DNA of 64,000 bases from Obrimoposthia wandeli (GCA_977020255.1 CDROCS010006097.1:1-64000); one strand, 5' to 3'. Counted from the stretch's first letter, positions 9,452 through 30,394 are shown. Translations and numbers: made by a program. The notes: a model not told the origin generated them from the letters alone.

Positions 9452-9610
9452 TAAAAAAACTCCTACAAATGATATTTATTAATAGATCAGTGAGTTATAA
9501 AAATATAGCCAATCTAGATAAAAGTCTAACCGATTTAGGTTTGATCCCAGCTACCGAAATAGGGATAATGCGCCCACCAACCAACTGTACCAAAATTATT
9601 GGAGAGTACT

Positions 9611-11044
9611 GTGAGTCGAGAGCAAGTTTTTGCCGCATGGAAACAGCGTGAAGCACTATCAGAGGAAATGGTTCCTTTAGTCGGTGTGTTATACCGTGAT
9701 TACAATATAGAGACGTCTGTATTCGGTCGTCTTCTGGTTAAACGCTCAGTTATCGATATTCTAAAGGCGCACCGCTTTGGTCGTCAAATAGAAAGTACTG
9801 AGCTCACAGTACACGATACTTTTCCTATTCTGAAATTGTTGTCAGAGCTTAACATCAAAAACGCTCATATCGATATCGGTAAGTTAGCGGTTAAGTACCG
9901 TAACCTAACGGAACAGGGTGATTTAAAAGAATTTTTACAGCAGGAGTTGAGCCCCGCTGTCGATAATAACTTGGATGATGCAACCGATGTCGTGCTTTAC
10001 GGTTTTGGTCGTATTGGTCGATTACTTGCACGCTTGCTCCTTGAGCGTGCTGGTGGTGGTGCGGGGATGCGCCTAAGCGCTATCGTAGTGCGTAAAGGTA
10101 AAGCTGAATTTGATTTAGAAAAGCGCGCTAGCTTATTGCGTCGCGATTCAGTACACGGCTCTTTCAAAGGTAATATCGTTGTCGACAATGAAAATCACGC
10201 GCTGATTGCCAATGGCAACATGATCAAGATTATTTTTGCTAACACGCCAGAAGAAGTGGATTACACACAGTACGGCATCAACAACGCATTGATCATTGAT
10301 AACACGGGTATGTGGCGCGACAAGGAAGGCTTATCAAAGCATCTACAGTCTAAGGGTGCCGCTAAGGTGTTGCTGACAGCTCCGGGTAAAGGCGTTAAGA
10401 ACATTGTTATGGGTGTTAACCATGATGATGTTAAAGATGAGGATACCATCCTATCAGCGGCTTCTTGCACCACCAATGCAATCACACCTGTACTTAAAGC
10501 GTTGTGTGATGAATACGGTGTTGAAAACGGCCACGTTGAAACTATCCACTCATTCACCAATGATCAAAACCTAATTGATAACTATCATAAAGGTGATCGT
10601 CGTGGACGTGCTGCTACCTTAAACATGGTAATTACTGAAACAGGCGCGGCAAAAGCTGTCTCTAAAGCGCTCCCAGAAATGGAAGGCAAGTTGACGGGCA
10701 ACGCAATCCGCGTACCTACGCCAAACGTGTCTATCGCTATCTTAAATCTTAACCTTAAGAAAGAGACGAATCGTGAAGAACTCAATGAGTTTTTACGTAA
10801 TGCAGCGCTACATTCTCCGTTGCAAAAGCAAATTGGTTACAGCATATCTCCAGAAGCTGTGTCCACTGATTTTGTTGGTTCGCGCTCTGCAGGTACGGTT
10901 GATGCACTGGCAACAATCGCTGAAGAAAACCGTTGTGTGCTCTACGTCTGGTACGACAACGAATTTGGTTACAGCTGCCAGGTGATGCGTCTAGCACAAA
11001 AAATGAGTCGTAATACGCTTAAGGCTTTCCCGCTAGAAGGTTAA
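9611..11044 (+). CDS. gap: Glyceraldehyde-3-phosphate dehydrogenase with ~130-aa N-terminal extension (Pseudomonas type)
   Basis: GFGRIGR, catalytic AASCTTN, WYDNEFGY; GTG at 9611 follows a GGAGAG RBS; divergent from mfd. Confidence 0.95.
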   Translation: MSREQVFAAWKQREALSEEMVPLVGVLYRDYNIETSVFGRLLVKRSVIDILKAHRFGRQIESTELTVHDTFPILKLLSELNIKNAHIDIGKLAVKYRNLTEQGDLKEFLQQELSPAVDNNLDDATDVVLYGFGRIGRLLARLLLERAGGGAGMRLSAIVVRKGKAEFDLEKRASLLRRDSVHGSFKGNIVVDNENHALIANGNMIKIIFANTPEEVDYTQYGINNALIIDNTGMWRDKEGLSKHLQSKGAAKVLLTAPGKGVKNIVMGVNHDDVKDEDTILSAASCTTNAITPVLKALCDEYGVENGHVETIHSFTNDQNLIDNYHKGDRRGRAATLNMVITETGAAKAVSKALPEMEGKLTGNAIRVPTPNVSIAILNLNLKKETNREELNEFLRNAALHSPLQKQIGYSISPEAVSTDFVGSRSAGTVDALATIAEENRCVLYVWYDNEFGYSCQVMRLAQKMSRNTLKAFPLEG

Positions 11045-12668: not shown

Positions 12669-15131
12669 TTATTCTTTCGTACTATCTTTTAGATACTTAA
12701 GCCAGTTATCTACAGGAAGAGGCTTTGAGAAATAATATCCTTGTGCGCGATGACCACCGATGTGTACTAGGGTATCTACATGACTTTGTGTTTCTACACC
12801 TTCTGCAATCACAGATAAACCTAATACTTGTGCCAGCTTTAATACAGTATTGGTTATTTCAAAATCTAGTTTTGATGAGTTTAAATCTTCAATAAAACTG
12901 CGATCGAGTTTGAGGTAGTCGGCGGACAAGTTTTTTAGCACAGAGAGTGAGGAATATCCTGTGCCAAAATCATCAATAGCTATTTTGTAGCCTCGCGCTC
13001 TGAGGGTATCAATTGTTTGTACACATGTAACAAAGTCACGCATCATATCCCGTTCGGTAATTTCTAGTATTAGCTGATGGGGTTGGCAACCGGTTTCATC
13101 GAGGATTATTTGAAGCTGATCAGCGAGGTCTGACATATAAAACATTCGCGCAGAAAAGTTTACCGCGAATGCAATCCCCTCTAAATTTATACCACTGCTT
13201 TGCCACTGGGTAATCAGGGTTGCAACTTTTTTAAACACCCATTTATCAATTGCGATAATGAGGTCTGTCTTCTCGGCAACTTCAAGGAAATCCGCGGGAG
13301 GTAAAAGCCCTAATTTAGGGTGTTCCCAGCGAACCAGTGCTTCAGCGCCTAATACTTTTCTGGTGCGCAGATCTACTTTAGGTTGGAAAAAGACCACAAG
13401 TTCGTCATTTTCAATCGCCTGGTGCAGGCCTACATTTGTTTCAATTAAGTCTGTTACTTCAAGCGTCATCTTATCAGCATAGATGCGGTACTGGTCTTTG
13501 CCATTTCGTTTAGCGTGATACATTGCTGTGTCGGCGTTGCGGATGAGTGTTTCATCATCTTTACCATGTAGTGGGAACTGACACACACCAATACTGGCGG
13601 AAACGAATATATTATTATCGTTAAGGTAATAAGGTTTGCGCAGTGCTTTGTTAATTCGCTCAGAGAGAATTTCTCCGCGCTTTAAACTGGCGTCTACGTT
13701 GATCACAATCATGAACTCATCACCGCCCATTCTAGCGACAAACCCGATGCCAACTATAAGTTCTTTGAGTGTTTTAGAAATGTTGATGAGTAAGTTATCG
13801 CCGGATGTATGGCCTAAAGAATCGTTTATAGTCTTAAATTCATCAATATCTAGATAGATGAGTAAGAAGGATAAGTTTTCCTTTTTTGCTTCAATTATAT
13901 ATTGATTTAGTTTCTTGGTTGCCAATAGCCGATTTGCCAAGCCCGTTAATGGGTCGTGGTGAGCGAGGAAATCGAAATTTTTCTTCTCATCGTTTAAATC
14001 TAAATAGGCATCAGATAAGCGAAGGGACATTGTATTAAATGCGTTCTCAATATGGCTCCACTCATCTGTTCGTCCAAGGTTTATAGGTTTATTGACGCCA
14101 TCGGACTCTAAACCTTCAAACCCCACCTTAAGGTCATCAAGAGGCTTTCGAATATGACGTTTAACCACCAAACTGATCAATAAAAAGGAGAGGAAAAATG
14201 CTAAAATACTGATAAAAATTGCGTTAAATCGCGAGTTTTCTATTTCCTTTTTTAAGTTTTCAGTAAGTTCTACCGCTTGTTTTTGCACGCGGATTTCTGC
14301 GCTTTCAACCATAGAGAGTAGTTCGTTTTGAGAGTTTACTAAGGCTCCAACTACTAACCAGCGTTGTTCTAGATTGGCACGAATACGCCTAAGTGCCGCG
14401 TTGTACTGTCGCACGGTCCGTTTCATGCGTTTTTTCTGATCTTTGACTTGTGGAGTATCTATATCAACGTTTGCCAGATGTAAAAGAAAGATGTCTAGTT
14501 CTTTTTCTACTTCAATGATCAGGATTTTTTCAGTCTCAGGGGTAATGCGACTGTGAATACTACCAACCATTTTACCGGTCATTAGAAACGCTTCTCGCAA
14601 CATACTGATTAAATCGAGTTCATTGTTGTAAATCATGTAGTCAGAATCTTGAATATGCTGCAGCTTCTTTTCTGAAATATATAGTTCTAGTTGGTCCAAT
14701 TGCTCGGCCAGTAAATTATCAATCTTCTGGCTTTTTTTAAGAATACGATTAAGTGAAAGTGAGCTGCCTAAAAATCGATGAAAATTATCGATAAAAACAT
14801 CCATTTTATCGGATAAATCACGGTTAGTTGATAGTTCACGAAGTTTTTGCAGTTGTAAGTCGATAGAAAATGCTTCTTCGGAGAGTGTAGTTTCACTGAA
14901 TAAAAATGCTTGTTCTAATAGCTTTACTCTAGATGTCAGTTTAAATACTCGCCGGCTAATGTCAGAGTTAGCTGTTAAAACAGTTACGTGTTCAGATGCT
15001 TGGGATTTTAAGGTCGACTCCACGTAGTAGAGTGAGCGAATTACAATGAAAATCGCTAAACTTACAATTACCAAGGAAAATAAATTGGCTATTATTAGCC
15101 GCTGAATGATAGATACTTGATTGAGTTTCAT
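12669..15131 (-). CDS. Membrane sensor with periplasmic helical domain, HAMP, GGDEF and EAL domains
   Basis: 2 TM segments, HAMP, HDPLTGLANR, RMGGDEF, GAEALVRW, DDFGTGYSSL; ATG 15131 overlaps the upstream stop (ATGA). Confidence 0.92.
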   Translation of the reverse strand: MKLNQVSIIQRLIIANLFSLVIVSLAIFIVIRSLYYVESTLKSQASEHVTVLTANSDISRRVFKLTSRVKLLEQAFLFSETTLSEEAFSIDLQLQKLRELSTNRDLSDKMDVFIDNFHRFLGSSLSLNRILKKSQKIDNLLAEQLDQLELYISEKKLQHIQDSDYMIYNNELDLISMLREAFLMTGKMVGSIHSRITPETEKILIIEVEKELDIFLLHLANVDIDTPQVKDQKKRMKRTVRQYNAALRRIRANLEQRWLVVGALVNSQNELLSMVESAEIRVQKQAVELTENLKKEIENSRFNAIFISILAFFLSFLLISLVVKRHIRKPLDDLKVGFEGLESDGVNKPINLGRTDEWSHIENAFNTMSLRLSDAYLDLNDEKKNFDFLAHHDPLTGLANRLLATKKLNQYIIEAKKENLSFLLIYLDIDEFKTINDSLGHTSGDNLLINISKTLKELIVGIGFVARMGGDEFMIVINVDASLKRGEILSERINKALRKPYYLNDNNIFVSASIGVCQFPLHGKDDETLIRNADTAMYHAKRNGKDQYRIYADKMTLEVTDLIETNVGLHQAIENDELVVFFQPKVDLRTRKVLGAEALVRWEHPKLGLLPPADFLEVAEKTDLIIAIDKWVFKKVATLITQWQSSGINLEGIAFAVNFSARMFYMSDLADQLQIILDETGCQPHQLILEITERDMMRDFVTCVQTIDTLRARGYKIAIDDFGTGYSSLSVLKNLSADYLKLDRSFIEDLNSSKLDFEITNTVLKLAQVLGLSVIAEGVETQSHVDTLVHIGGHRAQGYYFSKPLPVDNWLKYLKDSTKE

Positions 15132-16268
15132 TGAACTTTCCAAATGCGCAGATACACGTCACGGTAGCCATTTTGAGGATCATAAATTCCGGTATTTTTT
15201 TGATTGATCAACTCATCTACATTATTCGGTGTTACCAAATGGACAGGGGTGGAGTATCCGCTGGGAGGGTGATCATTAAATGCTCTGTTTAGTTCGTCTA
15301 TGATCTGCCATCCCTGTAGATTAAGGGGCTCAGGGACAGTTGCAAGTTGAAAAATTGTTTTGGCTAATTCGTTTATAAGCGGCTTTGCTGCCATCTCCCG
15401 CTGAAATATTTTGTGGGACCTGTTTTTGTCTATCAAGTCTGGCTTCTAATGAAGGTATTGCGTAATCGATATATAGATCATTAATCGATAAGATATGTGT
15501 GATTTCTTCGTCATGTACTTGCCACAGCTTTTTGAAGGTATCTGGCATTTCCTCAGCAATTTTATCTAGGGGAAGTGCTTTTAATTCTAACACCTTGCAT
15601 GTATTACAACGTTTTATTGTCTCCACCATTACTTTGGCTTTAATAGACGCAATTTTGTAGTTTGGATCGTTGAAAACAATCGCTTTAGCTTTTCCTTTAG
15701 AATCTACAATGGCCAACAATGCAGCAACTTCAGCAACCTCGATAGGATCAGTCGTAATATTGGTGAACAATCCCAGTTCATTATTACTCCCAGCGAGTTC
15801 AGATGCGTGCCATCCAATGATAACAATGCCCAAGCTTTTTGCTTGCTTTAGAATGTCTTTATGATGAAGAGCGTCAATGCCACCTAGAATGATAGCGTCA
15901 GGTTTAAAGCCAATAGCTTGTCTTAACGCAGCTCCTTGGCGAACTTTTGAGCCTCGACTATCAATAAATCTCAAATGCCAATCAAGATTTGAGAGTGCTT
16001 CAGACATACCTTTGGCTACGCCATAAACGCCGCCATTTCGAAGATCTGAAGCTATAAAAATAATTTTTTTGTCACGTACGAGACGTGGCCCAGTTGTAGG
16101 ACCATCCCAAGTTCGATTGTTTTCGACCGCCTTGGCTACTTTTTTTTGAGCGATAGAAAAAAAACTATTGTTATCAGTCTCAGCTAATGATGATGAAATA
16201 AAGGCAAAACCAAATACGCTAACTAGGCATCTAATATATTTAATTATCATTGTTTTATTTACATTCAT
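15128..16268 (-). pseudogene. Sugar-type (PBP1) periplasmic binding protein, split by a +1 frameshift
   Basis: ORF 15330-16268 (signal peptide, PBP1 motifs) continues in the frame of ORF 15128-15436 (QLATVPEPLNLQGWQIIDELNRA); removing one base from the A5 run at 15350-15354 fuses them. Confidence 0.75.
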
Positions 16269-16327
16269 ATTTTAGGTTATAGTATTATAGATTAGCATTA
16301 TAAAACAATCTATTAGTGGTGGTAGTC

Positions 16328-17440
16328 ATGGGTCGTCATACTTTTAAGGTATCATTTGTTGCGTTGACATTAGTGTTGATGGTCTTTCCAACGAGTGGCA
16401 TAACGACTGAATTGAATAGTAATACGCCTTCTAATTATCAAGTAGATAAGGATCAACTGGAGAAGTTTCAGGAAATTGTTAGTGCTGACCCGATACCACT
16501 GGTAGATAAAAAGATAAGCACTCCAATTCGTATTGCTGTCATTTATCCAAGTACCGACATATCCGACTTCTGGATACGCAACTACATGGCGATGACTAAG
16601 CGGCTAGCCACACTAAAAATTCCTTTTGAAGTGGATGAATACACCTCTAAACAGATACAGCATTCACTACAAACACAGCACACCCAAACGGTCCTGAACG
16701 CGAAAATGCCTTATGATTTTGTGATTTTTGGCCCATCGGAACTTGCTCATCAAGCGGCCAATATTCAAAAACTGGCGGCTTCCGAAGCATTCAAAACATT
16801 TATTTGGGCGTTTCATACGCCGGATCCAAGCTGGAAGTATCAACCGGATGCATGGTTTGATTTTTCCAGTGCTATGGGGGCGCAAGCGTTATGTGACTAT
16901 GCCATAGAGTCTCTTGGCGAAGATATTAACTTTGCTGCAAACAGAGGGATTCCGGGCATTACCGATACCCAGCGTTCACAAGGGTTTATTGACTGTGTAG
17001 AAGAGAATGCTGGTTGGTTGAATTTGTATGAGCACTTCGGACAATATCAGAAACTCGGTGGTGCTGATGGCGTAAGATTATTTCTTGATAACTTTCCAGA
17101 AGTTCAAATGATTCATAATGCCAACACTGCTATGACGATGGGAGCAGTTGATGCCCTTGGAGAAGCAGGGAAATTGTCGGAGATATTTGTGACTGGCTGG
17201 GGAGGGACGGCGAAAGAAATTGAAAAAATTAAGCAGGGTGAATTGAACGCTACCCCGATGAGAATGAGTGATGATCTGGGCGTGGCAACGGCGGAATCTA
17301 TTAAATTCTACCTCGAGAAAAGAGAGTCGGAAATACCACTTACTTACCTTGGTAGAATCATCGTTGTACATAGTGAAATGAGTGATGCTGAATTAAACTT
17401 CTTCAGCGAAGAAGCATTTCGATATTCAGGTAATAAGTAG
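16328..17440 (+). CDS. luxP: LuxP-like autoinducer-2-binding periplasmic protein
   Basis: IAVIYP..ISDFWIRN, GWGG, MRMSDDLGVATAESIK and C-terminal AFRYSGN match remembered Vibrio LuxP motifs; signal peptide. Confidence 0.8.
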   Translation: MGRHTFKVSFVALTLVLMVFPTSGITTELNSNTPSNYQVDKDQLEKFQEIVSADPIPLVDKKISTPIRIAVIYPSTDISDFWIRNYMAMTKRLATLKIPFEVDEYTSKQIQHSLQTQHTQTVLNAKMPYDFVIFGPSELAHQAANIQKLAASEAFKTFIWAFHTPDPSWKYQPDAWFDFSSAMGAQALCDYAIESLGEDINFAANRGIPGITDTQRSQGFIDCVEENAGWLNLYEHFGQYQKLGGADGVRLFLDNFPEVQMIHNANTAMTMGAVDALGEAGKLSEIFVTGWGGTAKEIEKIKQGELNATPMRMSDDLGVATAESIKFYLEKRESEIPLTYLGRIIVVHSEMSDAELNFFSEEAFRYSGNK

Positions 17441-28350: not shown

Positions 28351-29261
28351 TAATAGGTATCAGTTTGGCTGATATTTAAGGCATCAAGTTTAGCGTAATA
28401 CGGGCTTAAATCTTCACGTTGGCCTTGACGGGGTACGTCGTGCATCTTCAAATAAGGACGGGAATTTACTTCCAGTAGAATACATTTCTGTTGATCGAAA
28501 GGAACATCAATTCCTTTTTCCATAATGACATCTATGCCTAAAATGTTGGCGTTAAACGCTTTCAATACTTTGAGCAGCATTGTCTTATTGACGTCTGGAA
28601 TGGTATTTTTATCTAAAGTGTGGATCGTTCCACCCGGCGCAAGTGCAATGCGATAAAATAAGGTAACGGTTTCATTGAGAGCGGGCACAGAGTCAAAACT
28701 TAAGCCCTGTTTAGCCAAATACTTTGTTGTTAGATCTGTTTCTTTGATCGGATAGATAGTTGGAAAGAGCCCCATTTCTTGACGAGTATTATTCTCAGCT
28801 GCAGCCAAAGTGCGAATATTATCCTCACCATTTCCAGTCACCGTGGGCGGGAAGCGTTCAATGGCCGACATGATTTCACCATCAATGACAACGACGCGGT
28901 AATTATGGCCCTGTAAGTATTGTTCTATTACAGTGGTTGGCCACCAAATTTTGGCGAGTAGCAACGCTTTATAGAGTTCTTTGTAATTGCGAATAGGAAA
29001 ATAACTACCGCGCGAAAATCCGCTGACATTAGGTTTAATAACAAGTGGAAAGCCATGCTCTTTGACGAAATTATGAGCGGCTAGCGGGCCAAAAATTATC
29101 TTTCCTTTAGCATGCGGAATATCGTTAGCGGCAAAAGTGTCACGGGCTTGTTTTTTGGAACGACAGCCGCGGCGTACATCTAACGAATTGTAACTACTAC
29201 AGTCAGACATGAACTTTTGACTAACCCAAGCATAAATTTTACGTTTAATTGCGAACATCAC
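28350..29261 (-). CDS. Stand-alone CphA/GshF-type ATP-grasp ligase
   Basis: GFPLVIKP, IEQYLQG.NYRVVVIDG, R.PPTVTGNG, GGT, GIDVI, LEVNSRP; lid insertion typical of cyanophycin/glutathione synthetase ATP-grasp domains; no Mur-ligase or GshA domain. Confidence 0.8.
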   Translation of the reverse strand: MMFAIKRKIYAWVSQKFMSDCSSYNSLDVRRGCRSKKQARDTFAANDIPHAKGKIIFGPLAAHNFVKEHGFPLVIKPNVSGFSRGSYFPIRNYKELYKALLLAKIWWPTTVIEQYLQGHNYRVVVIDGEIMSAIERFPPTVTGNGEDNIRTLAAAENNTRQEMGLFPTIYPIKETDLTTKYLAKQGLSFDSVPALNETVTLFYRIALAPGGTIHTLDKNTIPDVNKTMLLKVLKAFNANILGIDVIMEKGIDVPFDQQKCILLEVNSRPYLKMHDVPRQGQREDLSPYYAKLDALNISQTDTY

Positions 29262-29265
29262 TAAC

Positions 29266-30111
29266 TCACTTAGTTCTAGGTTGGAATAAGGTTTTTTTGA
29301 TAAAAACTTTTTTACTTTCTTGATGTTTCGGGATCACTCCTACCAAGCTGACAAGGTGGTACATACTGGAAAGGATAAAGCGAAATTTTTCTTTGAATTC
29401 AACTGTTTTATCCATCAAGTTTATCGGCATTGGCAGGTAAAGGTTAATCTCAATGACTTTAAAATTACCTTGCTGTAGCGCTTCGAGCGACTCTGCACGC
29501 ACCCCAACGCGGGCAAAGTTATAATTCCCGATACAAGCGACACTTTTCCAAATATCGTTGAGCTGGTTTGGGTTTAGTTTGGCGGTCATAGAAGTATAAA
29601 AGGTGTGTTCGTTCTTAACACTGTTGACCGGTAAATCCATGCCACTGGTATTGGATGTTTCCGTTACGGTTAAGCAGGTGTAGCTCGAAAGCTCGCGATG
29701 ATCCCGAATATAAAAAATTTCAAACTCACGCTTCTCTTGAGCCGCTTCCTGAATCAAGTAGACCATTTTGCTATTCATGCAGTGGTTGCGTATATAGGCA
29801 AGTTCAGTGGCGTTGTCAGCGCGGCGTACGCCTTGACCATTTTGGCCCCACTCTGGTTTTACAAATACAGGAAAGCGTTCAGGGACCAGTAAACCATCAT
29901 CTATCGATTGCTTCAGGCGCCAGCTTGGCGGGATGTTCTGATCGATATCATTTTTAGAATAGATCCCTAGTGCTTCATTGAAATGCGCTGCGTTAATTTG
30001 AAAATAACGCCAAGGTGCTTTTAGGCGTCTTATACAGGTCAAAATGAAGGTGATAACTAATAAAAATCTAATCAGCATATAAAGTCCTTTAACATTCAAT
30101 TGATTGCTCAA
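29266..30111 (-). CDS. Divergent ATP-grasp (carboxylate-amine ligase-like) protein
   Basis: FPVFVKPEWGQNGQGV, YLIQE..EFEIFY, FKVIEIN; hydrophobic N-terminus; 4 nt from the next gene. Confidence 0.65.
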   Translation of the reverse strand: MSNQLNVKGLYMLIRFLLVITFILTCIRRLKAPWRYFQINAAHFNEALGIYSKNDIDQNIPPSWRLKQSIDDGLLVPERFPVFVKPEWGQNGQGVRRADNATELAYIRNHCMNSKMVYLIQEAAQEKREFEIFYIRDHRELSSYTCLTVTETSNTSGMDLPVNSVKNEHTFYTSMTAKLNPNQLNDIWKSVACIGNYNFARVGVRAESLEALQQGNFKVIEINLYLPMPINLMDKTVEFKEKFRFILSSMYHLVSLVGVIPKHQESKKVFIKKTLFQPRTK

Positions 30112-30394
30112 TTGAATACTGGCTCAGCTGCGGATAAAACGATATTAGCCGTCAGCTTAAAAATAGTTAATTTTATTTAATTCATCATAAATAAAACCGT
30201 TGTAACTATAAGTATTTACGCCCAGTAAGCGTCTATAGATTCAAAATAAGGGGATAAAAACTAAGGTTATTCTAGATAAAGTAAAGATTAGCTCACTTTG
30301 AGGACAACACTCATTTTAAACCCGGTACTTCAGCTATATCCGCAAATAGCGAATAAGCTGAGTGGGGTGATTTTAATCACTTATGCGAGGATGA

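Follow-up and report, generated by a model that had tools for sequence, protein, structure and literature searches.

Only two systems are established in which a periplasmic binding protein drives an enzyme of cyclic di-GMP (c-di-GMP) turnover, MbaA-NspS and ScrC-ScrB (PMC8050422). In NspS-MbaA of Vibrio cholerae and ScrB-ScrC of Vibrio parahaemolyticus the binding protein stands beside a GGDEF-EAL enzyme with two transmembrane (TM) helices, and the enzyme is thought to be switched between cyclase and phosphodiesterase (PMC8050422, PMC8967002). NspS and ScrB belong to type II families (SBP_bac_8 and SBP_bac_3), and the sensors of MbaA and ScrC are described as dCache-like (PMC8050422). The helical bimodular (HBM) fold of TorS reads a type I binding protein, TorT (PMC8050422). 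The subject of this report is a three-gene locus in a 64,000-nucleotide stretch of DNA from Obrimoposthia wandeli (GCA_977020255.1 CDROCS010006097.1:1-64000); this whole stretch is called the window. The locus encodes a LuxP-like binding protein, a second binding protein (PBP2) and a GGDEF-EAL enzyme, together termed the trio. We favour, with a probability of roughly 0.55, the view that the trio is a binding-protein-gated c-di-GMP switch for a sugar-like ligand.

The features of the locus are as follows.

12669..15131, minus strand: gene of the GGDEF-EAL membrane enzyme, 820 aa from the ATG at 15131
12720..13427, minus strand: EAL domain; EALVR, DDFGTG, EGVE and the other catalytic motifs are kept
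13494..13964, minus strand: GGDEF domain, with the GGDEF motif at residues 469-473
13992..14156, minus strand: HAMP linker, residues ~326-380, by family profile against NarQ and Tsr and by PF00672 in relatives
14232..15026, minus strand: periplasmic sensor domain, residues ~36-300, HBM fold as predicted by an AlphaFold model
15128..16268, minus strand: PBP2 gene, type I (CUT2 sugar-type) periplasmic binding protein, Pfam Peripla_BP_4
16268..15330, minus strand: N-terminal frame of PBP2, 312 aa
15350..15354: A5 run (T5 on the coding strand), site of the PBP2 frame change by translations and by alignment to orthologues
~15349..15128, minus strand: C-terminal frame of PBP2, the last ~60 residues; its stop overlaps the enzyme ATG (ATGA 15131-15128)
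16269..16327: short, AT-rich divergent control region between the PBP2 and LuxP-like genes
16316..17440, plus strand: LuxP-like gene, 374 aa from the GTG at 16316, probable ATG at 16328; signal peptide; Peripla_BP_4

The PBP2 gene lies upstream of the enzyme gene on the same strand, and the LuxP-like gene is divergent from both, with 47-77 bp between the start codons of the two binding-protein genes according to the starts chosen. A first-pass annotation of this DNA had described a luxP gene, not followed by a kinase gene, head-to-head with a binding-protein/enzyme operon at about 60 bp between starts. Two Peripla_BP_4 genes and a GGDEF-EAL gene are indeed present in this divergent arrangement, and there is no kinase or transporter gene within ~6 kb of the window trio. 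Two further statements hold in part. The gene of a second PBP1-type binding protein is there, but owing to a frameshift it is not one open reading frame (ORF) in the window; the ATGA overlap exists at 15131-15128, but joins only the C-terminal PBP2 frame to the enzyme.

The trio is phylogenetically conserved. A motif-guided scan, with one genome per species, gave 371 species with a relative of the LuxP-like protein, and the best 80 loci were analysed. All 44 gammaproteobacterial loci among these 80 have the LuxP-like gene divergent from PBP2, which is followed by the enzyme gene; in one of them (L007) the contig ends inside PBP2 and only the LuxP-like/PBP2 pair is visible. Holders of the trio include Vibrio nigripulchritudo, V. 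penaeicida, the Splendidus and Coralliilyticus groups, Grimontia and Enterovibrio, as well as Marinomonas, Pontibacterium, Oceanobacter and uncultured Pseudomonadales. The PBP2 and enzyme genes overlap by 4 bp in the window and in orthologous loci. Genes that flank the trio differ among genera, and no ATP-binding cassette (ABC) gene occurs within 8 kb of it, either in the window or across the 44 gammaproteobacterial loci. Conservation of the neighbourhood, a point on which the earlier proposal hinged, is therefore evident, with the same layout maintained amid changing flanks.

A variant is present in a Cellvibrionaceae metagenome-assembled genome (MAG; OZ245996.1, L050:5053-9113), where the LuxP-like gene is divergent from an HBM-GGDEF-EAL enzyme gene across a 480-bp spacer that contains no PBP2 gene or remnant. 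The LuxP-like gene is therefore tied to the enzyme independently of PBP2. The conserved layout and this variant bear out the view that all three genes of the trio belong together as one unit. In several Marinomonas genomes, genes of ammonium-transporter (Amt) type adjoin the trio; in two loci (L003:8222-11299 and L040:9779-12856) the product is a ~1025-aa Amt protein fused to PAS-GGDEF-EAL, and in a third (L012:1755-3965) it is a 736-aa Amt-type protein.

The enzyme is matched in Pfam by GGDEF at residues 390-546 (E 5e-41) and by EAL at residues 569-804 (E 1e-71). All 45 orthologues compared retain the motifs GGDEF, EAL[VI]R, DDFGTG and EGxE, along with the remaining catalytic motifs of EAL, in agreement with the earlier statement that both catalytic motifs are intact in the window enzyme; the enzyme has no RxxD I-site. 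TM windows are found at residues 11-35 (TM1) and 301-325 (TM2). As to the HAMP-GGDEF-EAL architecture assigned at first, the GGDEF and EAL parts are secured by Pfam. Pfam does not call HAMP in the window enzyme, but this linker is supported by a profile of the family, which finds the TM2+HAMP segments of NarQ (E 5e-5) and Tsr; relatives of the enzyme carry a precomputed PF00672 match.

The sensor region was modelled with AlphaFold from 36 orthologues (pLDDT 81). The model is entirely helical and has TM1 (~11-35), the periplasmic part (~36-300) and a long helix that passes through TM2 into HAMP. Foldseek returns TorS sensor-TorT complexes first (E 7e-4) and McpS next (TM-score 0.68 on the target). 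With VIA-align the top match is the McpS ligand-binding domain, 2yfa (Z 17.9, root-mean-square deviation 2.5, 222/235 residues aligned), and TorS (3o1i/3o1h/3o1j) gives Z 17.2-17.4 over 229-233 residues; these scores exceed the level quoted by the tool for unrelated helical bundles. In the predicted structure, the periplasmic domain of the enzyme (~265 residues) is thus an HBM sensor. The all-helical model rules out a LuxQ-like or a dCache-like sensor. Pfam has no match in the sensor region, and neither PF21689 (TorS_sensor_domain) nor PF09308 (LuxQ-periplasm) is matched in the enzyme. A word search with the sensor region found this domain family only in GGDEF-EAL enzymes of 820-830 aa (n=205), which come from the same taxa and none of which has a functional name.

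A model of a PBP2 orthologue (pLDDT 90) matches YtfQ, RbsB and other sugar binding proteins in Foldseek at 12-20% identity, and PBP2 is by its predicted structure a generic CUT2 sugar-binding fold. The idea that PBP2 is a relative of TorT was rejected, since nothing but generic sugar binding proteins came up in profile and fold searches.

Of major interest is the relation of the LuxP-like protein to true LuxP. Among solved structures V. harveyi LuxP is by far its closest relative (E 2e-40 over residues 49-373), followed by the family of the ribose-binding protein RbsB (E 1e-9). Identity to two LuxP-clade representatives is 30-32%, and neither binding protein of the trio matches an NCBIfam family above cut-off. 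Proteins P0373 and P0375, which reach 298 and 343 bits with the LuxP crystal sequences (1jx6), served as proxies of the LuxP clade, and representatives of the wider superfamily came from an exhaustive profile-free search. A tree of 68 proteins, obtained by a quick IQ-TREE run, has a split with support of 100 that places the LuxP proxies on one side and the window LuxP-like protein on the other. On the latter side, binding proteins of an alphaproteobacterial ABC importer form the sister group of the trio clade (98), inside a clade with support of 99, and other ABC-linked representatives lie further out.

The residues of LuxP that contact autoinducer 2 (AI-2) we take to be Q77, S79, W82, N159, R215, T266, W289 and R310, a list said to stem from the LuxP structure of Chen et al. 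in 2002; the numbering was checked against the 1zhh alignment. Six of these eight positions are kept in the LuxP-like protein, and the AI-2 signature is broken at the other two (Q77 to D81 and N159 to A165). The LuxP segment Q158/N159/I160/T161 is W/A/F/H. The two sides of the tree compare as follows.

LuxP side: Q77, S79, W82, Q158-N159-I160-T161, R215, T266, W289, R310; near-invariant in 29 representatives
Trio and importer sisters: D, S, W, W-A-F-H, R, T, W, R; invariant

Equivalents of S79, W82, R215, T266, W289 and R310 are common to the whole superfamily, importer-linked members included, and the kept residues, among them both arginines, are therefore not diagnostic of AI-2 or borate. 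It should be added that both LuxP-side representatives sampled adjoin a protein with a LuxQ-periplasm domain, which the window enzyme lacks. Judged from its sequence, the window "LuxP" is only LuxP-like, a member of a sister family of the true AI-2 receptor that lies outside the LuxP clade. The identification of the gene as luxP is consequently not upheld, in view of the tree split, the replacement of Q77 and N159 and a partner without a LuxQ-type domain. The same holds for AI-2 as the signal: the signature residues are lost, the closest outside relatives are importer binding proteins in loci with LacI regulators and lactonases, and the sensor is of HBM type.

Some holders of the trio have a separate AI-2 pathway. 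V. coralliilyticus, which carries the trio (P0021, P0146), keeps a separate working LuxPQ (PMC11837519), and LuxS, LuxPQ and LuxUO are present in V. splendidus (PMC2561040). Marinomonas sp. MED121 is without luxS (PMC2561040). The "LuxP" given for MED121 in that paper was considered as a published case of the LuxP-like protein, and is a different gene.

A true LuxP-clade protein next to a c-di-GMP enzyme was found elsewhere, on a 39-kb metagenome contig (ENA ERZ18242372 NODE_998, L088:5001-8837). The binding protein, P0373, has the full AI-2 residue signature and scores 298 bits to the LuxP crystal sequence; it is followed, 4 bp on, by a 912-aa protein with LuxQ-periplasm, PAS, GGDEF and EAL domains, as confirmed with Pfam. 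Read from its sequence, this pair is the direct LuxP-to-c-di-GMP wiring that the first-pass annotation had imagined for the window, in another organism and with a LuxQ-type sensor. A search for a paper on this LuxP/LuxQ-periplasm-GGDEF-EAL pair found none.

The closest relatives of both binding proteins outside the trio point to ABC sugar importers. In 35 alphaproteobacterial-type loci the LuxP-like gene is the last of an importer set that consists of an ATPase (~251 aa, with a single nucleotide-binding domain), a permease (~374 aa) and the binding protein. A second CUT2 importer is directly upstream in 22 of the 31 loci whose upstream sequence is long enough; in L072 it is inverted and 4 kb away. 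Its genes encode a LacI regulator, an ATPase (507 aa), a permease (340 aa) and a binding protein (350 aa). No protein outside the trio is closer to PBP2 than this 350-aa binding protein (38-40% identity across ~325 residues, E ~1e-70). Such adjacent two-importer systems are found in Ruegeria, Hoeflea, Tritonibacter and others, and the importer is also present in Ruegeria pomeroyi DSS-3, on a megaplasmid, and in Phaeobacter inhibens. The LuxP-like protein is 50-57% identical between alpha- and gammaproteobacteria, and the pocket residues D81, S83, W86, W164-A165-F166-H167, R220, T271, W295 and R316 are invariant in importer-linked and enzyme-linked forms alike. The best 120 relatives of the importer permease, among the matches listed, are all alphaproteobacterial.

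The co-occurrence of both protein families in two contexts is best explained by recruitment from neighbouring importers to a c-di-GMP enzyme, and the sequences suggest that the binding proteins moved as a pair from transport to signalling. As for substrates, a lactonase of the SMP-30/gluconolactonase type follows the importer in 12 loci, and the loci of Ruegeria, Tritonibacter and Epibacterium add genes of PdxA-like, enolase-superfamily dehydratase, DHDPS-like and aldehyde dehydrogenase type. No lsr-type AI-2 processing genes were seen in the alphaproteobacterial importer loci, which are, to go by their gene content, sugar or sugar-acid utilisation loci. The substrate of the importer is not mentioned in a transporter screen of R. 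pomeroyi (PMC10130141) or in a 2026 transcript-marker preprint. In a Geminicoccaceae MAG (L072:2560-5674) a DctP-type (TRAP) binding protein and a histidine kinase are encoded directly upstream of the LuxP-like importer; the kinase has HAMP and a weak, sub-threshold Pfam match to TorS_sensor_domain, and the two may form a second binding-protein/helical-sensor pair.

A mechanism can be proposed from these findings. Both binding proteins, taken to be periplasmic because of their signal-peptide-like N-termini, would be exported to the periplasm. The enzyme sits in the inner membrane, with the HBM domain in the periplasm between two TM helices, followed by HAMP, GGDEF and EAL. Ligand-free or ligand-bound binding proteins may dock on the HBM domain, as TorT does on TorS, and docking would shift the balance of c-di-GMP synthesis and breakdown via HAMP, as NspS does for MbaA and ScrB for ScrC. 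Sugar-like ligands are likely because both proteins are relatives of binding proteins of adjacent CUT2 importers and because the pocket residues of the LuxP-like protein are identical to those of its importer-linked relatives. The ligand would thus be a sugar-like compound or compounds that the sister importers transport, and one or two related nutrients are the likeliest case. Membership of the "LuxP" gene in a sister family of the AI-2 receptor implies that the unit probably senses a sugar-like nutrient rather than a quorum signal, and it would report the availability of this nutrient to the biofilm/motility decision.

The second gene of the trio shows an anomaly in the window. Alignment to intact 372-aa orthologues places a change of frame in PBP2 between ...AYKRISQNNF and QLATVPEP..., and the protein is full-length in all 43 other orthologues aligned. 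The sole public run that contains the window DNA has a coverage of ~5-7x, and its contigs end at 15163/15307 and resume at 15375, with none that spans the site. No other gene in the 64-kb window is clearly split. One further ORF pair, at window 28353-30123 on the minus strand, is ambiguous and may be one split gene or two genes: its members, of 327 and 285 aa, share 64 nt when measured from stop to stop, the overlap runs across T7/A5/T6 runs, and the first ORF has a weak match to RimK-like ATP-grasp. The PBP2 frameshift is either a homopolymer assembly error or the mark of a copy that runs on the LuxP-like protein alone, like the natural variant.

Several points weigh against a switch gated by two binding proteins. 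The gating itself is inferred. HBM domains such as McpS bind small acids directly, and the HBM sensor of the trio might for that reason need no binding proteins. The LuxP-like gene is divergently transcribed and outside the operon, and its product is unusually well conserved between alpha- and gammaproteobacteria, which could mean that it still works with a transporter whose genes lie elsewhere. When the distance matrices of the three proteins are compared, the correlations are high (r 0.87-0.97; partial r 0.39 and 0.53 once the catalytic-domain distance is removed) but do not rigorously exceed what shared ancestry would give, and they do not separate the models. In addition, PBP2 is out of frame in the window. 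An alternative is that PBP2, or a small molecule directly on the HBM domain, controls the enzyme, and that the LuxP-like protein is a transport protein with its importer elsewhere, co-regulated only through the divergent promoter region that the genes share. Translational coupling to the enzyme is indeed a property of PBP2 and not of the LuxP-like gene; conservation among the three is strongest in the LuxP-like protein (mean distance 0.43 vs 0.53-0.63), whose pocket is the same as in importer-linked forms, as expected if it still docks on a permease; and the top VIA match, 2yfa, is of the McpS type, which binds its ligand directly. We nevertheless regard this explanation as unlikely. The LuxP-like gene stays with the enzyme in 44 loci despite changing flanks and encodes the sole binding protein beside the enzyme in the Cellvibrionaceae variant, whereas no gammaproteobacterial locus has an ABC gene within the 8 kb considered, and the 120 permease relatives ranked best among the matches listed are all alphaproteobacterial. 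A two-input coincidence sensor can also be envisaged, in which the two importer-derived binding proteins on the two HBM modules would set c-di-GMP and the LuxP-like protein would bind the furanosyl borate ester of a marine sugar or AI-2 via the two arginines shared with LuxP. We think this distinctly improbable; if true, LuxP quorum sensing and the nutrient sensor would both have branched from one borate-sugar-binding superfamily.

That the LuxP-like protein binds AI-2 itself (the furanosyl borate diester) or a close borate/sugar signal, and with PBP2 turns quorum information into c-di-GMP, seems to us very doubtful. In its favour, V. harveyi LuxP is the closest solved structure (E 2e-40), the protein retains 6/8 AI-2 contact residues, the two borate-contacting arginines among them, and every holder found is marine, seawater being rich in boron; also, the contig with a true LuxP-clade protein beside a GGDEF-EAL enzyme (L088) shows that AI-2-to-c-di-GMP logic exists. 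However, the kept residues are superfamily-wide, and hence not diagnostic, and the diagnostic Q77 and Q158-N159-I160-T161, near-invariant in the LuxP clade, are D and W-A-F-H here; the fully supported split (100) separates the protein from LuxP, its sister proteins feed ABC importers beside LacI regulators and lactonases, with no lsr-type genes found there, and the partner domain is HBM, not LuxQ-periplasm. Moreover, a trio holder, Marinomonas, lacks luxS (PMC2561040), and V. splendidus (PMC2561040) and V. coralliilyticus (PMC11837519) keep LuxPQ separately. A last alternative, compatible with the other readings, is that the module is decaying in the window genome, with a genuine frameshift in PBP2, translational coupling to the enzyme gone and a unit that works only in part or not at all. 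The frame does change at 15350-15354, all 43 other PBP2 orthologues are intact, and a generally error-ridden assembly is not evident, because PBP2 is the sole clearly split gene in 64 kb. Yet a +1 change in a 5-base homopolymer is typical of assembly errors, the public contigs (~5-7x) break exactly around this site, both PBP2 halves are without further stops and 70% identical to orthologues, and nothing is broken in the enzyme or the LuxP-like gene, whose motifs are all kept, so that we hold decay to be rather improbable. Gating by importer-derived binding proteins is thus the explanation we prefer.

The spacer between the divergent genes measures 33-130 bp in nearly all orthologous loci and 304 bp in L046. 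These spacers (window 16269-16327 and the equivalents in L006-L049) are AT-rich and contain repeated TTATA[AG] elements that are kept within genera, possibly overlapping promoters or a regulator site; the one promoter-like match in the window spacer, at 16258-16285(+), is not above chance. The neighbours of the trio in the window are unrelated housekeeping and regulatory genes (mfd, a GAPDH-like gene, an MGMT-type DNA-binding protein, EamA, AsnC and LysR). The GAPDH-like ORF at window 9599-11044 on the plus strand encodes 481 aa from the first possible start, with Pfam domains from residue 130, and its true start is probably further downstream.

A paper that describes the trio, or a LuxP paralogue with a GGDEF-EAL protein, was not found in the literature. 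The two established binding-protein-driven c-di-GMP enzymes use neither a sugar-class binding protein nor a helical bimodular sensor, unlike the trio, which is present in dozens of species of Vibrio, Marinomonas and related genera, coral and shellfish pathogens included. If it works as proposed, it would link a specific nutrient to the biofilm/motility decision, and it may be a clean example of transport proteins recruited to signalling. It should be pointed out that automatic "LuxP" labels on the LuxP-like family (JGI and UniRef names) overstate the spread of AI-2 receptors; the residue signature together with the tree split offers a simple way to tell true LuxP from look-alikes.

The trio can be compared with four known systems. 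With LuxP-LuxQ it shares a type I periplasmic binding protein of the same superfamily, without a transporter, which would signal through a membrane partner. However, the LuxP-like protein is in another clade and has D in place of Q77 and W-A-F-H in place of Q-N-I-T; LuxQ has a tandem PAS periplasmic domain and a kinase output, whereas the trio enzyme has HBM and GGDEF-EAL; and the trio has a second binding protein. As in NspS-MbaA and ScrB-ScrC, a two-TM GGDEF-EAL enzyme with a periplasmic domain has a binding-protein gene in the same operon, and the analogy to NspS-MbaA drawn in the first-pass annotation is reasonable in function. The trio differs in that its binding proteins are of the type I sugar class (Peripla_BP_4) and are two, not one, its sensor is HBM, and there is no sequence homology outside GGDEF-EAL. 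Because the binding-protein and sensor families differ, the trio is an analogue and not a member of these c-di-GMP systems gated by binding proteins. TorT-TorS has the same combination of a type I binding protein and a helical bimodular sensor between two TM helices, followed by HAMP, but the output of TorS is a histidine kinase and not GGDEF-EAL, the ligand class differs, the trio enzyme has no Pfam TorS_sensor_domain match and PBP2 has no special similarity to TorT. CUT2 importers of the RbsB/YtfQ type share the Peripla_BP_4 fold and the signal peptide, with 50-57% and 38-40% identity, but the binding proteins of the trio have a c-di-GMP enzyme instead of an adjacent permease and ATPase. The trio is thus similar to NspS-MbaA and ScrB-ScrC in function and to TorT-TorS in architecture, with binding proteins derived from CUT2 importers.

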